Shown here piece by piece: positions 40,379-48,218 of a stretch of 64,000 nucleotides of DNA; the first letter of the stretch is position 1, and each line of letters begins with the position of its first letter. The stretch lies in NCBI GenBank assembly GCA_950097015.1, contig CATNEN010000002.1, positions 1,426,001 to 1,490,000 of the forward strand, read 5' to 3'. Under the pieces are notes generated by a model. That model saw only the letters and a program-made list of their open reading frames with translations, made no database searches and was not told where the DNA came from. The DNA comes from Macrostomum hystrix (taxonomy: Eukaryota; Animalia; Platyhelminthes). Both the position numbers and the translations under genes were made by a program.

Positions 40379-43300
40379 CTAGGAGAACTCCTGGCACTTA
40401 ATCATCACCTTGATTGCGTTGTCAGCGGCCGTTCTCGAAGTCTCAAACGCTGCTTCGCTGCGGCTAAGAGGATACCTGCGACAGAATTAATAAATTGAAA
40501 TGAAATAAGAGTAATTAATATAATCCAGCTGTTTACATTCAGTGATATCCAAGCGGTCTGTGTCCTAGGACTCGTGTAGGTGGGGGGTCACAGACACGTC
40601 AACTTTAAACCCAGACAATGCTGGTACCCCATCAGGGAGTGCGTTAACGCGTTCGTCTCTCGCGCCGTGGTCTATGAGCCAACCGCCAAGGCACAATGAG
40701 AGCGTACACTGCCTGACGATGAAAAATTCATGACACACCTGGTGTGAGTGTCTGCCTGTGTACAGTCAAAGGGCCAGGTGTGCAGCCGCAGCTATTGCGC
40801 GGCGCATCTGAAAGCTGCGTATGGCTGTTCAGTCCATGGACTGTGCATGGTGACGCGACACTCACCCTCAGTTACCCCAGCTAATACTGGAACTCTTGAA
40901 ATTTTAGGAGATTACAGAAAAATGAAAAGTGTGGGTTGTTGAAACACTTGCAATGGTCTTTCTGCTGTTAACTTTAATTAGTTCAAATATTATCGTCCTC
41001 ACCGATGCGTGACAAGCCGTTTGACGTCAACAGCGCCGCTAGCAACTAGCGACAGCGCGTCAGCGTAGCAGTTTGCGTAGCGAAACACGCCCCGAATGTC
41101 CACCTCGCGAGCGATGGCCGTCTGCGATAGCGGCAGCGGCATCTCGCGGATACGGCCGCGGCCGACCGTCACCAGACAGCCGCCCGGCCGGCATGACAGC
41201 AGAGCCAGGCGAATGGCCTCCACTGAACCTGTGCACTCGATGGCCGCGTCCGGTTGATGGCCACCGAATAGCTGCGTAACCATGGCAACCTGAGCTTCTG
41301 CAGCTGTATTTGAAGGATCTGGGTTCTTAAGCTGGTTTGAAAATTATAAAAAATAGCATGTATAGCATATTGGCTAAATTGCTGCTGGGGCGGAATTAGT
41401 TCTTTGCTGCTGAGGGGATTAGTTCTCTCCTGCTGGGGGGATTAGTTCTTTGCTGCTGAGGGGATTAGTTCTCTGCTGCTGAGGGGATTAGTTCTTTGCT
41501 GCTGAGGGGATTAGTTCTCTCCTGCTGGGGGGGATTAGTTCTCTGCTGCTGGGGGGATTAGTTCTCTCCTGCTGGGGGGGATTAGTTCTCTGCTGCTGGG
41601 GGAATTAGTTCTCTGCTGCTGAGGGGATTAGTTCTTTGCTGCTGAGGGGATTAGTTCTCTGCTGCTGAGGGGATTAGTTCTCTGCTGCTGGGGGAATTAG
41701 TTCTCTGCTGCTGAGGGGATTAGTTCTTTGCTGCTGAGGGGATTAGTTCTCTGCTGCTGGGGGAATTAGTTCTCTGCTGCTGGGGGGGAATTAGTTCTTT
41801 GCTGCTGGGGGAATTAGTTCTCTGCTGCTGGGGCGGAATTAGTTCTTTGCTGCTGGGGCGGAATTAGTTCTCTGCTGCTGGGGCGGAATTAGTTCTTTGC
41901 TGCTGGGGGAATTAGTTCTCTGCTGCTGGGGGGGGGATTAGTTCTCTGCTGCTGGGGGGGGATTAGTTCTCTGCTGCTGGGGGAGGAATTAGTTCTTTGC
42001 TGCTGAGGGGGATTAGTTCTCTGCTGCTGGGGGGGAATTAGTTCTCTCCTGCTGGGGGGAATTAGTTCTCTGCTGCTGGGGGGGATTTAGTTCTCTGCTG
42101 CTGAGGGGGGAATTAGTTCTCTGCTGCTGAGGGGGGAATTAGTTCTCTCCTGCTGAGGGGGGAATTAGTTCTCTCCTGCTGAGGGGGGAATTAGTTCTCT
42201 GCTGCTGGGGGGGAATTAGTTCTCTCCTGCTGGGGGGAATTAGTTCTCTGCTGCTGGGGGGGATTTAGTTCTCTGCTGCTGAGGGGGGAATTAGTTCTCT
42301 GCTGCTGGGGGGGAATTAGTTCTCTGCTGCTGAGGGGGGAATTAGTTCTCTGCTGCTGGGGGGGATTTAGTTCTCTGCTGCTGAGGGGGGAATTAGTTCT
42401 CTGCTGCTGAGGGGGGAATTAGTTCTCTCCTGCTGAGGGGGGAATTAGTTCTCTCCTGCTGAGGGGGGAATTAGTTCTCTGCTGCTGGGGGGAATTAGTT
42501 CTCTGCTGCTGAGGGGGGAATTAGTTCTCTCCTGCTGAGGGGGGAATTAGTTCTCTGCTGCTGGGGGGGAATTAGTTCTCTCCTGCTGGGGGGAATTAGT
42601 TCTCTGCTGCTGGGGGGGATTTAGTTCTCTGCTGCTGGGGGGGATTTAGTTCTCTGCTGCTGAGGGGGGAATTAGTTCTCTGCTGCTGAGGGGGGAATTA
42701 GTTCTCTGCTGCTGGGGGGAATTAGGCGGGAATTAGTTCTCTCCTGCTGAGGGGGGAATTAGTTCTCTGCTGAGGGAGGAATTAGTTCTCTGCTGTTGAG
42801 GGGGGAATTAGTTCTCTGCTGCTGGGGGGAAATTAGTTCTCTGCTGCTTGGGGGACATTGGTTATTTGCTACTGAGGGGACATTAGTTCTCTGCTCCTTG
42901 GGGGACATTGGTTATTTACTGCCGGGTGGACATCCTGGTTTTTTACTGCTGAGGGGATAGTATTCACATGTACCTAAGTAGCATTAAGCTGAGTTGTATC
43001 AAACGCAAGCAACTTGTGTAATTTTGCCCCAATGGGGCTCTTGGTGTACAGACCGGATGTCTCAGAATGTATTCCAGCTCAGACTGACTATTTTTGTATT
43101 TAGTGAGAATTCTAATTCTCGTTGAATCGCAATCACGTATATTCGCAATCAGGGAAATTATTACTGACGAAATTAGTTTTCGTTTTTGTTTGCTTTCAGG
43201 TGTGTTTTGTCCTTCTGCATTACACAATATTTTTTGTCTAAACAGTAGTGCTCCCCGAAGGGGGGCAAAACTTGCTAGTATTGGCTAAATGTCAGAGGAC

Positions 43301-45528
43301 TGAACAGCTGTACATGGTTGCGAATATAATTTCTAAGTATTATTATTTATTTATACGTAGAAGACGTAGAGAAAATATTCACTTTACTTATTAACAATGC
43401 TACTGACATTAGTATCCGTCGTGTTTTGTAATATCGTAATAATATTGCTCGCCGATCGTTTTAACAAATTCGCTGTTTCTTTTAACTCGTCAAATTTTCG
43501 TTTTCTATTTTCGCACCAATTTAAACCGGCTTGATCGTATAATTAAAATAAATATATATTAACCAAATACGCTGCTCATTATCCGCCGCACAAAAGGTTT
43601 CTGGCCTGAACTAAATCTACTATTACTACTACTAAATACACAATCCTGTACAAAATATCAGATTATTAGTACTTTTCTTAATAACAAAAGTAACGCAAGG
43701 CCGTCCGTTCTTATCACTTGCGCTGTTGGGTGACCTAGAGTACCAGCAAATTACGAGTACGATAAGCACGCGTATAAGCAGAAAAGACACCCAGTGCTTG
43801 CGACTTCAAAAAATTACATACTAACAAAGTAGTTAGACATTTCTTGTTAACCCTTCCTTATACTGGACCTCATATCTCATAACGAAAAAAGCACAACTGA
43901 CTCCACTGTGTGTTTGTGACAAATTACTGGGCTTGCATGTAACTTCTAAAGATTAACAAAGGTTTTTATAATGTATTATATTGCATTGCTTTGGCTAAAC
44001 TATTTTATCAAGAACCTTGAAAATGTGCACCGGCGTATAAACTTACATGCTAGTCTTAGAGGGGGGCATGGGGTGCCGGGTCCCCCCTAATCGGCTGACG
44101 AAAATATGTGGCGCCCCATAGTACGAGTAGTGGCGTCCCATAGTACGAGCAGTGGCGTCCCATAGTACGAGTAAGGGCACCCCATAGTACGAGTAGTGAC
44201 GCCTCCTTGGTAGTGACGGCCCAGTGGTAGTGACGCCCCCGTGGTAGTGACGCCCCCGTGGTAGTGGCGCCCCCGTGGTAGTGACGCCCCCGTGGTAGTG
44301 ACGCCTCCGTGGTAGTGACGCCCCCGTGGTAGCGGCGCCCCCGTGGTAGTGACGCCCCCGTGGTAGTGACGCCCCCGTGGTAGTGGCGCCCCAGTGGTAG
44401 TGACGCCCCCGTGGTAGTGGCGCCCCCGTGGTAGTGACGCCCCCGTGGTAGTGACGCCCCCGTGGTAGTGGCGCCCCAGTGGTAGTGACGCCCCCGTGGT
44501 AGTGGCGCCCCCGTGGTAGTGACGCCCCCGTGGTACGGGCGCCACATACTTCGAGTAGTGGTATAGTACTAGTGTGATCAGTAAAATCTAACCACCAGTG
44601 GTTCTTGGTGGTAGTGGTGCTCCGGTGGTTGTGCCCCAAGCAGTGGCGCCCCCACAAAAGACTAAAATCCTGGCTACGCCACTGATGCGAATAATACAAC
44701 TGTCTGTGCTCATGACTCGCTTAAGCAAATGCCCCGACCCCAGACAAGACCCCTTACTCTCGGATTCCGTCACCAGAAGCGTGGCGTCAGCGCCCATCTC
44801 CTTGGCAACGGCCAGTCGGTGCGGGTTGATGTCGGTCAAGACGACAGCATCGGCGCCCATGGCCCTGGCCGTCAGCAGGTTGACGAGGCCGATTGGCCCG
44901 GCGCCGCAGACCAGCACTCGGCTGCCGAGGGTCACGCCGCCTCTCCGACAGGCGTGAACTCCCACGCTGAGCGGCTCGAGCAGGGCGCCCTCCTCCAGAG
45001 AGACGTGCTCCGGGAGGCGAAAGCAAAAGTCCGCGTCGTGCACGTGCCACCCGCTCAGGCTGCCATCGACTGGCGGGGTGGCCAGGAACTTCACGTCCGG
45101 GCACAGGTTGTAGCGGCCTGACCGGCAGTGCTGGCAGAAGCGGCAAGGAACTCCCGGCTCAATGGCCACTCGATCGCCCGGCTGGAGGCTCGTCACCTCG
45201 TCGCCGACCGCGGCAACCACGCCGGCCGACTCGTGACCGAGCACCATGGGCTGACGGACCACGAAGTTGCCGATTGCTCCGTGAGTCCAATAGTGCACGT
45301 CCGAGCCGCAGATGCCCACTGAGTCCATTCGGAGCAGGACTTGGCGCGGCCCGGGCACCGGGATCGGCCTCTCCTCCTGCGTAAACAATGATGGCACATG
45401 GACCATTGTGCGTCACAAGGAATCAAGTCGGTAGTAAATAACGTAAGAGAGCTGTACTGAGAATGCTTCCTTACCAGCACAATTTCATTGGCTCGTCGGA
45501 GTACAACGGCGATATTCTTCTCTGACAT
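40379..45528 (-). CDS. SORD: Sorbitol dehydrogenase paralog A, 4 exons
   Basis: Exons 45528-45475, 45376-44758, 41318-41003, 40475-40379, phase-consistent. Motifs [11 protein letters not shown], four-Cys [48 protein letters not shown]. Confidence 0.92.
40670..40775 (-). repeat. Dispersed repeat family X, diverged copy 5 (SORD-A intron 3)
   Basis: Reverse complement CAGGTGTGTCATGAATTTTTCATCGTCAGGCAGTGTACGCTCTCATTGTGCCTTGGCGGTTGG. Confidence 0.6.
41380..43278 (+). mobile_element. Helitron-like element carrying an expanded ~24-26 bp minisatellite (GGGGGGAATTAGTTCTCTGCTGCTG)n, about 41380-42900
   Basis: Ends in a GC hairpin (43250-43266), 8-nt spacer, CTAG then T; homology with 34865-35025 stops at the CTAG. 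Confidence 0.7.
44028..44684 (-). mobile_element. hAT-like MITE containing a 17-bp minisatellite (GTAGTGACGCCCCCGTG)n
   Basis: Right end ...AAATCCTGGCTACGCCACTG (reverse CAGTGGCGTAGCCAGG); imperfect left end CACCGGCGTA; no clear TSD. Confidence 0.55.
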
Positions 45529-46001
45529 CTGAAATTTTTTATACTTATGTTCAATTTGAAATTTAAAAAGACTAACAGAAAACTGGAGTAGGCTTAATTC
45601 TATTGCGCTTAAACCTCATCACCTCATCAATAAAATAATAGACAAAAAAATTTTATATTTAAAATTTTTATCTACGAATTTGTTGCTTGATTTAATAGTT
45701 GATTTTTTTTATTTCTTAGCAACATTTATTGAACTCACGCATTTACGAGTATTGTTGAGCCAAACATTTTGAAAATGTGCCCATGAAGAAAGTTACATTT
45801 TATGTAATTAAGATAAAAATTATGAAAAGTAAATAAAACCAAGACCATGATTTTAGTTTTAGGATTACTAAGCACAAGCCTAGTAAGAATAAACATCTTA
45901 TTTAATGGCATTATTTTCGTGTCTACTCAAAGTGTGATCCATTTATAAGTTCTCATAGCCGTGTAGCGGTAGTGTCTTGTCCATGGCCAGCTGTGGCTAA
46001 A

Positions 46002-48218
46002 TCACGGCTCCTGACACTTGATCATCACTTTGATGGCATTGCCGGCTCCCGTTTTGGCCGTCTCGAAGGCCTCGACACTCTTTGATAGCGGAAAGCTGCG
46101 ATCGAAAATGTCAAGTAGATGGTTTATTGACTTAATTATATTGGCTCGGATTAATTTTATTTAGTTTATTAACTTAGCCTTGTCACTTTTGCAGCCAAGT
46201 GTCATCAACATTTTAATCTACGCCCAACACAGACTAGGGACGTTTTTGTCCGCTCCCAGTTTTTTGTCACTATTTTATTGTCTTGCATCTGCACTTTGAT
46301 CCGCGCCGGGGACACACTCTCTCTCACCCTGCATGGTGGGGATCAGGGCCTTTTGTGTATGCCTGTGTGTGTGATTCTGCCGGTTTATTGATAGGGTTGC
46401 TTGTCTCACGTGATCTTCAGAGGACTGTCTGTTTATTGTTCTAATGACTCATGCCTATTTTTAGTAACAAGTCTGCCCGTCCGATGAGTTTTCTCCGACG
46501 TATTCTGACGTCAGTTTCTATTTTTAGTAACAGATCCTTGGTTATAGGCCTGCTGCCTTATTTATCTGACGTCCGTTTCTATTAATAGAAACCACGTGAT
46601 GCGTCGGCTACCCATACCTTGTCTGCCCCAGTTAGGCCAAGTAATTTAGTTTTTTGTTGGTATTTTATTATTCTTCCTGTTTTCTTTTTTTATTGATTGA
46701 TAATTAATATTTCCGATTTTAATTAACTCTAATCCCCTCTAACTACCAAGATCCAGTTGAGGTTGGCCAGTGATCTTCGGCACTGTGCTGAACATAATTT
46801 TGCGAGAGCCTCATTCCGACTCTGACTAATTTATTTTTTAGTGTGGGCTAGTGAACGCAGTGCGCTGTCTACATTTGTCTGGAAATTCAACGCAACTACA
46901 GATTGGAGCCGCCTGTCTCGTGAGTTGGCTGATCTCATCATTGTTGACGGGCAGACACTTCACTTGTTAACTATAACTTTCTCTCGTTAAGGAAGCTTTA
47001 CAATTTTAAGCGTCACTGAATGGCAAACTCACCGATGAGTGATCAACGGTTTGACGTTGACACGGCCTTGCGCCACCATTGACAGCGCGTCCTGGTAGCA
47101 ATTGGCGTAGCGGAACACTCCGCGAATGTCCACCTCGCGCACGCTGGCCTGCACAATCGGCAGCGAGATCTCCGCCTTGCCGAGGCCCACCAGAACGACG
47201 CAGCCACCGGAGCGACAGGTGAATACAGCCAGGCGAATCGACTGCTCTGCGCCGGTGCACTCGATCACAACATCTGGCTGATAACCGTTGAATAGTGATG
47301 ATGCTTGGGCGACTAGCGACTCTGCGTCTGCAATAAATAGTGGACTACATACTTTATTTAGGTCCATTGATTTAAACAGCTTAAAATCAACGCTTATGGC
47401 CCGTTCTTTACCTCCCGTCGACAAAAGCGTGGCGTCAGCGCCCATCTCCTTGGCAACGGCCAGTCGGTGCGGGTTGATGTCGGTCAAGACGACAGCATCG
47501 GCGCCCATGGCCCTGGCCGTCAGCAGGTTGACGAGGCCGATTGGCCCGGCGCCGCAGACCAGCACTCGGCTGCCGAGGGTCACGCCGCCTCTCCGACAGG
47601 CGTGAACTCCCACGCTGAGCGGCTCGAGCAGGGCGCCCTCCTCCAGAGAGACGTGCTCCGGGAGGCGAAAGCAAAAGTCCGCGTCGTGCACGTGCCACCC
47701 GCTCAGGCTGCCATCGACTGGCGGGGTGGCCAGGAACTTCATGTCCGGGCACAGGTTGTAGCGGCCTGACCGGCAGTGCTGGCAGAAGCGGCAGGGAACT
47801 CCCGGCTCGATGGCCACTCGATCGCCCGGCTGGAGGCTCGTCACCTCGTCGCCGACCGCGGCAACCACGCCGGCCGACTCGTGACCGAGCACCATGGGCT
47901 GACGGACCACGAAGTTGCCGATTGCTCCGTGAGTCCAATAGTGCACGTCCGAGCCGCAGATGCCCACTGAGTCCATTCGGAGCAGGACTTGGCGCGGCCC
48001 GGGCACCGGGATCGGCCTCTCCTCCTGCGTAAACAATGATGGCACATGGACCATTGTGCGTCACAAGGAATCAAGTTGGTAGTAAATAACGTATGCATTT
48101 TTGTAATTCGGCAGCTATCTGGTTTTAAATTTTTTATGAAAAAGACAAACTGCCAACCCACAAAAATGATTTTGTTGACACTCTGCAGCACCACAGAAGT
48201 ATTCCTCTTGTCAGACAT
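46002..48218 (-). CDS. SORD: Sorbitol dehydrogenase paralog B, 4 exons
   Basis: Exons 48218-48162, 48024-47412, 47327-47033, 46095-46002. Canonical LVGLG...[11 protein letters not shown] and [19 protein letters not shown]. Confidence 0.95.

Follow-up and report, generated by a model that had tools for sequence, protein, structure and literature searches.

A near-identical exon in two otherwise diverged tandem sorbitol dehydrogenase genes of Macrostomum hystrix, best explained by interlocus gene conversion

Two tandem sorbitol dehydrogenase genes

The window, a stretch of 64,000 nucleotides (nts) from the flatworm Macrostomum hystrix (contig CATNEN010000002.1, positions 1,426,001 to 1,490,000), harbors two genes arranged in tandem on the minus strand: gene B (48218-46002) upstream and gene A (45528-40379) downstream, the ATG of the latter sitting 473 nts downstream of the gene B stop codon. 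Each comprises four exons separated by GT-AG introns at equal positions and in equal phases, and each carries an intact open reading frame (ORF), with predicted products of 352 amino acids for gene B and 356 for gene A. Their exons, together with the second intron of gene A, are as follows.

48162..48218, minus strand: gene B exon 1, 19 codons, ATG at 48218, GT donor at 48161
47412..48024, minus strand: gene B exon 2, 613 nts, ADH_N domain, zinc ligands, GxGxxG
47033..47327, minus strand: gene B exon 3, 295 nts, remainder of the NAD-binding domain
46002..46095, minus strand: gene B exon 4, includes the stop codon
45475..45528, minus strand: gene A exon 1, 18 codons, ATG at 45528
44758..45376, minus strand: gene A exon 2, 619 nts
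41304..44757, minus strand: gene A intron 2, 3454 nts, carries minisatellites
41003..41303, minus strand: gene A exon 3, 301 nts, 62% amino acid and 68.5% nucleotide identity to gene B exon 3
40379..40475, minus strand: gene A exon 4, includes the stop codon

Exon 2, the longest of the exons, encodes the zinc ligands as well as the beginning of the NAD fold. The minisatellites of gene A intron 2 have units of 26 nts (61.5 copies, 41380-42904), 22 nts (4.4 copies, 44108-44203) and 17 nts (20 copies, 44193-44535). A model in which gene A is truncated at exon 2, its ORF entering the 17-nt minisatellite, was rejected because exons 3 and 4 follow in proper phase 3.45 kb further downstream. Protein searches and trees employed single-exon or uninterrupted-ORF queries, while joined exons were used only to check length, frame and stop codon.

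As judged from their predicted products, both genes are sorbitol dehydrogenases (SORD, or L-iditol 2-dehydrogenase), zinc-containing MDR enzymes. Gene B bears the domains PF08240 (ADH_N, GroES-like; 2.9e-27) and PF00107 (ADH_zinc_N; 9.3e-26), and exons 2 and 3 of gene A match the ADH_N and ADH_zinc_N families as well. The best matches among solved structures are the animal sorbitol dehydrogenases of sheep (3QE3) and human (1PL6), with E ~1e-115. The zinc ligands (Cys, His-Glu, Glu), the GxGxxG motif and the NAD-specifying Asp of the TD motif are aligned with and identical to those of the sheep enzyme, and this holds for both genes because all of these elements lie within the shared exon 2. A four-Cys motif of exon 2 that is lacking in sheep SDH, entertained as an oddity, proved to be ordinary, as it is seen in 112 of 114 animal homologs. 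Compared with the animal sorbitol dehydrogenases found, the gene B product reaches at most ~65% identity. A word search for close orthologs, first with the gene B ORF and then with exon 3, brought up no Macrostomum sequence and nothing exceeding 65-70% identity, the best outside homologs standing at 63-70%. The nearest transcript lies in Logan run SRR13370223. In the 220-Mb genome, A and B are the only SORD genes, the next MDR relatives being 33-39% identical.

A near-identical tract within diverged genes

The principal feature of this gene pair is a tract of 669 nts that is 99.4% identical between the two genes. Re-alignment agrees exactly with the sequence-only reading, which had described the two segments as gap-free at a constant offset of 2648 with four substitutions, and the pair was recovered independently by a repeat search of the window. 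A search of the whole 220-Mb genome located two copies of the tract, those of genes A and B, and found no third copy or donor elsewhere.

44777..45445, minus strand: near-identical tract, gene A copy, 600 nts of exon 2 and 69 nts of intron 1 (pairwise alignment, genome search)
47425..48093, minus strand: near-identical tract, gene B copy (pairwise alignment, genome search)

The four mismatches (45094, 45146, 45161 and 45429 in gene A coordinates), all transitions, separate perfect runs of 317, 51, 14, 267 and 16 nts. Under the gene models, the difference at 45094 gives Val in gene A and Met in gene B, those at 45146 and 45161 are silent, and that at 45429 falls in intron 1, the same classes as first proposed. 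The clustering of three of these differences within 68 nts was considered as a sign of a discontinuous tract, an idea that was dropped (rough estimate ~0.1, not significant). The original description of the tract as almost all of exon 2 plus about 70 nts of intron 1 also stands, since it consists of the last 69 nts of intron 1 followed by 600 nts from the start of exon 2, ending 19 nts short of the exon end in gene A and 13 nts short in gene B. Its intronic part, with only 43% GC, is identical at 68 of the 69 bases.

On both sides of the tract, identity in 50-nt bins is 0.14-0.36, which is the background level. The two edges differ in character. The intron-1 edge is abrupt, with matches at 2 of the next 30 positions, and the remainder of intron 1 (29 nts in gene A, 68 nts in gene B) is unalignable. 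At the exon-side edge, 10 of the 13 positions past the tract end still match; the sequences being alignable there, the endpoint lies within homologous sequence. Colinearity is lost just beyond, where intron 2 measures 84 nts in gene B versus 3454 nts in gene A.

Outside the tract, the genes have diverged strongly, as the sequence-only reading held for exons 1, 3 and 4 and for the other introns. At the nucleotide level, exon 1 is 61% identical, exon 3 68.5% and exon 4 66%. By the Nei-Gojobori method, exon 3 has a dS of 1.10 and a dN of 0.30 (dN/dS ~0.27), with no exact run longer than 17 nts common to the two copies, and synonymous sites are saturated in exons 1 and 4. Within the tract, the same method yields a dS of 0.013, with 2 of ~154 synonymous sites differing, and a dN of 0.002. 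The homogenised exon is one of four, accounting for ~57% of the coding sequence. Chance is excluded as the origin of the identity: the binomial probability of 665 matches in 669 positions is ~1e-113 at a background identity of 0.657 (that of the aligned coding columns outside exon 2), and 10,000 permutations of the coding match vector yielded no perfect run longer than 84, versus the 317 observed.

Probable interlocus gene conversion and its alternatives

Gene conversion mends a break in one copy with the other copy as template. Interlocus (non-allelic) conversion is very probably the best explanation of the tract, and the original proposal of ectopic conversion or exon replacement between diverged SORD paralogs fits every test run. 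An old tandem, same-strand duplication within this flatworm lineage would have given rise to genes A and B, and the 669-nt segment was later homogenised, so far as this can be demonstrated from sequence, the template for repair being the other copy 2.6 kb away. Three features characteristic of conversion are found here. First, the near-identical segment is flanked on both sides by homologous, far more diverged sequence. Second, the identity reaches synonymous and noncoding sites. Third, the segments are colinear and indel-free, and occupy homologous positions with equal frame and equal splice acceptor. The length of the tract is within the range reported for conversion tracts. Repair templated by RNA or cDNA is rejected because the tract holds 69 nts of intron 1. 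The latest conversion event is recent, given the four differences and the contrast in dS between the tract and the sequence outside it, where it is at least 1.1. The process itself is well known, and no new mechanism is revealed.

A quite improbable alternative is that exon 2 of B was pasted into a fully diverged A, or the reverse, in a single recent replacement independent of homology along the tract, for example by template switching during replication or through an inserted partial duplicate. The sudden intron-1 edge and the unalignable sequence behind it resemble a junction rather than a fading heteroduplex, but older indels that had already ended homology would leave an edge of this kind just as readily. 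Moreover, the segment occupies precisely homologous positions in A and B, free of indels and of any duplicated or deleted flank, with frame and splice sites preserved, and its exon-side flank is still homologous, a typical conversion endpoint.

Very improbable, too, is an artefact of assembly or polishing, whereby the true, diverged exon 2 of one copy was overwritten by consensus or short-read polishing. The assembly was built by canu from PacBio long reads and processed with Purge Haplotigs, Arrow and Pilon (PMC10468722). The last step relied on Illumina reads mapped by bwa (PMC10468722), and within the perfect runs of 317 and 267 nts short reads have no unique placement. However, a 669-nt repeat at 2.6-kb spacing is far shorter than long reads, which find anchorage in the unique sequence on either side. 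Polishing may alter a handful of bases where copies are nearly identical, but raising ~66% identity to 99.4%, in frame and free of indels, is beyond it. Four differences persist between the copies, and the tract ends at homologous points in the two genes, both of them intact. The assembly has a Merqury QV of 42.8 and k-mers that are mostly single-copy (PMC10468722). Finally, the idea that extreme purifying selection preserved the catalytic domain without DNA transfer has next to no chance of being correct: exon 2 does encode the enzyme's best-conserved part (90 columns at least 95% conserved among homologs), but protein-level selection is refuted by identity that extends to synonymous sites (dS 0.013 vs. 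1.1 in exon 3) and to all but one of 69 intronic bases, and animal homologs are only ~70% identical at the protein level across exon 2.

Evolutionary rate, and probable recurrence and direction of conversion

Interlocus conversion raises the questions of how often and in which direction the exon was copied, and the unequal pace of the two genes bears on the second. An exon-3 tree pairs A and B as sisters (SH-aLRT 98), the branch of A measuring 0.94 and that of B 0.22; they are likewise sisters in the exon-2 tree. A relative-rate test counted a median of 15 A-unique versus 5 B-unique changes (p=0.025). By these measures, the C-terminal half of gene A evolves faster than that of gene B. A similar pattern appears at conserved columns, defined as those with at least 95% conservation across 114 animal SORDs (90 in exon 2, 41 in exon 3). 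Departures from these near-invariant residues number 3/90 in the shared exon 2 and 3/41 in exon 3 of B, versus 9/41 in exon 3 of A (p=0.0014 for the shared exon 2 against A exon 3). The shared exon 2 is no farther from its homologs than these are from each other (0.66 vs. 0.63), and in its conservation it looks B-like.

Exon 2 has probably been kept homogeneous by repeated conversion. In such a course of events, recurrent conversion would have maintained an island of homology of ~0.67 kb since the duplication, while the short exons (54-57, 295-301 and 94-97 nts), isolated by unalignable introns, would have dropped below the length and identity needs of recombination and then drifted. Recurrence is suggested because the shorter exons now have at most 17 identical bases in common, and recurrent homogenisation of the long exon is favored because a single conversion at flank-level divergence is unlikely. 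Efficient conversion is reported to need ~200 bp and mostly >80% identity, although rare instances at less than 80% are known (PMC3924818), which leaves a single event as an unlikely alternative. GC at third codon positions (GC3) is 0.83 in exon 2 versus 0.65-0.70 in exons 3-4 (Fisher p=1.5e-5), a difference expected from GC-biased conversion; local codon usage may be all that lies behind it, and the intronic bases of the tract reach only 43% GC.

The net direction of conversion was probably from gene B to gene A, such that the faster-evolving gene A would keep receiving a well-conserved catalytic domain. The argument for direction from the B-like character of exon 2 loses some weight, as greater conservation than in exon 3 is an intrinsic property of exons encoding the catalytic domain. 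Mosaic isoenzymes, the outcome foreseen for the pair, are plausible given the intact ORFs of both genes and the dN/dS of ~0.27 in exon 3.

Comparable systems and implications

A close parallel is the tandem collagen pair col-12/col-13 of Caenorhabditis elegans, for which, as for hsp16 and act-1/act-3, interlocus gene conversion has been inferred (PMC3966223). These old tandem duplicates are ~99.5% identical over the coding region and the intron sequence within it, with flanks that are almost unalignable, and conversion tracts extending into introns have been reported (PMC3966223). The SORD genes likewise form an old tandem pair combining near-identity, intron sequence included, with diverged flanks. 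Unlike col-12/col-13, in which the whole ORF is homogenised and comparisons with orthologs confirm it, the SORD pair is homogenised in one exon of four, as recognised from the comparison of paralogs alone. A study on the GOT1 paralogs of the copepod Tigriopus californicus describes mosaic genes produced by conversion, with islands of divergence beside converted stretches (PMC3728101). The two cases share metabolic-enzyme paralogs made mosaic by conversion, but they differ in enzyme and phylum.

One might extend the argument to a regime spanning the genome of this highly selfing flatworm, in which only exons longer than a threshold lying between ~300 and ~600 nts remain in concerted evolution and conversion passes a directional filter, with B as a conserved "master" that rewrites the catalytic module of A. 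Such a regime is doubtful; if true, the cofactor-binding half of A would explore new sequence without loss of catalysis.

On a practical level, the SORD pair misleads both the dating of duplications and the assignment of orthologs in Macrostomum, as exon 2 looks very recent and the other exons ancient. Likewise, short reads and primers cannot distinguish genes A and B over ~0.6 kb. The pair offers a tidy example in which exon length and intron divergence would set the bounds of concerted evolution, and in which a fast-evolving duplicate may retain an up-to-date catalytic domain.

Gene models and enzyme identity

Genes A and B, the two tandem sorbitol dehydrogenase (SORD) paralogs, lie in the same orientation: gene B is upstream, and 473 nt separate its stop codon from the start of gene A. 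Neither reading frame is interrupted, and all introns are GT-AG, with positions and phases matching between the genes. Intron 2 spans 84 nt in B versus 3454 nt in A, where it is filled with minisatellites; the 17-nt array begins ~220 nt past the end of gene A exon 2.

Exons of the SORD paralogs and minisatellites of gene A intron 2 (window positions)
48218-48162, minus strand, gene B exon 1
48024-47412, minus strand, gene B exon 2
47327-47033, minus strand, gene B exon 3
46095-46002, minus strand, gene B exon 4 (predicted product, 352 aa)
45528-45475, minus strand, gene A exon 1
45376-44758, minus strand, gene A exon 2
41303-41003, minus strand, gene A exon 3
40475-40379, minus strand, gene A exon 4 (predicted product, 356 aa)
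41380-42904, minisatellite, 26 nt x 61.5
44108-44203, minisatellite, 22 nt x 4.4
44193-44535, minisatellite, 17 nt x 20

Homology searches and trees used single-exon or uninterrupted-ORF sequences as queries, the exons being joined only by a local script for length and frame. The Pfam domains are ADH_N and ADH_zinc_N, and the top solved-structure matches are sheep and human sorbitol dehydrogenase (E ~1e-115). Alignment to solved structures places the Cys, His-Glu and Glu zinc ligands, the GxGxxG motif and the NAD-specifying Asp all in exon 2. No further SORD gene was found in the genome, the next relatives being 33-39% identical. The ATG of gene A (45528) is immediately preceded by tttcag, which resembles a splice acceptor (45528-46002 being the interval to the gene B stop). 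Together with the 473-nt spacing on one strand, this hexamer could mark an acceptor site for spliced-leader (SL) trans-splicing, or the two genes could form an operon-like pair; SL trans-splicing is reported for Macrostomum hystrix (PMC10468722).

A near-identical tract within diverged genes

The sequence-only reading had described an indel-free alignment of 44777-45445 with 47425-48093 carrying four substitutions in 669 bp and covering nearly all of exon 2 plus ~70 nt of intron 1. Position by position this is borne out: the offset is a constant 2648 nt, mismatches occur only at 45094, 45146, 45161 and 45429, and the tract combines 69 nt at the 3′ end of intron 1 with the first 600 nt of exon 2. 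A repeat search recovers the same pair independently, and searching the complete assembly (220,453,370 bases, 42 contigs) at the DNA level found these two copies only. The mismatches delimit runs of 317, 51, 14, 267 and 16 nt. All four are transitions; those at 45094, 45161 and 45429 (partners at +2648) are CpG to TpG/CpA changes. CpG sites make up 22% of tract sites, giving P = 0.036 for at least three of four differences falling in CpG, a possible sign, from a tiny sample, of CpG hypermutability in a flatworm.

The remaining exons are strongly diverged, as had also been proposed, and in the 50-nt bins just outside the tract identity drops to 0.14-0.36.

Divergence between genes A and B (Nei-Gojobori estimates of dS and dN)
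Tract: nt identity 99.4%, dS 0.013, dN 0.002
Exon 1: nt identity 61%, dS saturated, dN 0.27
Exon 3: nt identity 68.5%, dS 1.10, dN 0.30
Exon 4: nt identity 66%, dS saturated, dN 0.22

With an identity of 0.657 outside the tract, P is ~1e-113 for 665/669 matches, and still 9e-11 at an assumed 95% background; the longest mismatch-free run observed, 317 nt, compares with a maximum of 84 nt over 10,000 permutations.

Probable gene conversion and its alternatives

Interlocus gene conversion is very probably the cause of this pattern, which is its textbook signature in tandem paralogs that lie close together. The ectopic conversion first suggested is supported by the contrast in dS inside and outside the tract and by identity reaching into the intron; the tract length lies within the published range for conversion tracts. 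The exon-side edge lies 19 nt from the 3′ end of exon 2 in gene A and 13 nt in gene B, and beyond it the two still align (10/13 matches, a 6-nt indel), so that this endpoint falls inside homologous sequence. At the intron-side edge similarity ends abruptly; the part of intron 1 that lies beyond it, 29 nt long in A and 68 nt in B, is unalignable. Such an edge is compatible with a replacement independent of homology, which is nevertheless disfavoured by the exactly homologous, indel-free placement and by the conversion-like exon-side edge. An assembly or polishing artefact is unlikely: long reads anchored in the unique sequence on either side far exceed the repeat in length, the two copies still differ at four positions, and both ends of the tract sit at homologous, in-frame places in genes that are intact. 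PacBio long reads from a highly inbred line were assembled with canu, followed by haplotig purging and polishing with Arrow and Pilon (PMC10468722). Selection alone as the cause of exon 2 identity is refuted, since synonymous and intronic sites are identical too.

Efficient conversion is reported to require a near-perfectly matching stretch of ~200 bp and, in most cases, >80% identity (PMC3924818); the longest exact run shared by the two copies of exon 3 is 17 bases. Because a one-off conversion is improbable if exon 2 had already diverged as far as exon 3, repeated homogenisation of an exon 2 homology island is the favoured reading. Recurrent conversion would have kept this single long island (~0.67 kb) uniform, and the short exons, separated from it by introns that diverged quickly, would have stayed out of its reach. 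Exon 2 has a GC3 of 0.83, compared with 0.65-0.70 for exons 3-4 (p=1.5e-5) and 0.50-0.58 for exon 1; the tract's 69 intronic bases have a GC content of only 43%. The high exon 2 GC3 fits GC-biased conversion, though it is not specific to it.

Duplication history and probable direction of transfer

An exon 3 tree that includes 114 animal SORDs joins A and B as sister branches (SH-aLRT 98), which makes the duplication lineage-specific but old. Their branches differ fourfold (0.94 for A, 0.22 for B), and in a relative-rate test the median number of changes unique to A is 15, versus 5 unique to B (p=0.025). Of the near-invariant columns, those that at least 95% of homologs conserve, A exon 3 departs at 9/41, B exon 3 at 3/41 and the shared exon 2 at 3/90 (p=0.0014 for the last against A exon 3). 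The shared exon 2 is no more distant from other animals' SORDs than those are from one another. Gene B is the more likely net donor, because the shared exon 2 is well conserved while A exon 3 departs most; catalytic domains are more conserved in any case, which weakens the argument. As a speculation, a break-prone array beside the tract might favour gene A as recipient. Gene A exon 3 also carries two one-codon insertions relative to B. Exon 3 dN/dS is ~0.27 despite the gene A departures, and the gene A ORF is intact; the departures in this cofactor-domain exon could mean that the gene A enzyme handles its cofactor or substrate differently, or that constraint has relaxed.

Parallels and significance

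A literature search on Macrostomum turned up no paper about gene conversion. The SORD tract is a clean example of a phenomenon whose closely similar cases are long known. In C. elegans, col-12 and col-13 share 99.5% ORF identity, intron included, with unalignable flanks (PMC3966223). The tract is of consequence chiefly for annotating the SORD locus, dating the duplication and mapping reads there, and the pair is a data point toward a possible exon-length threshold.
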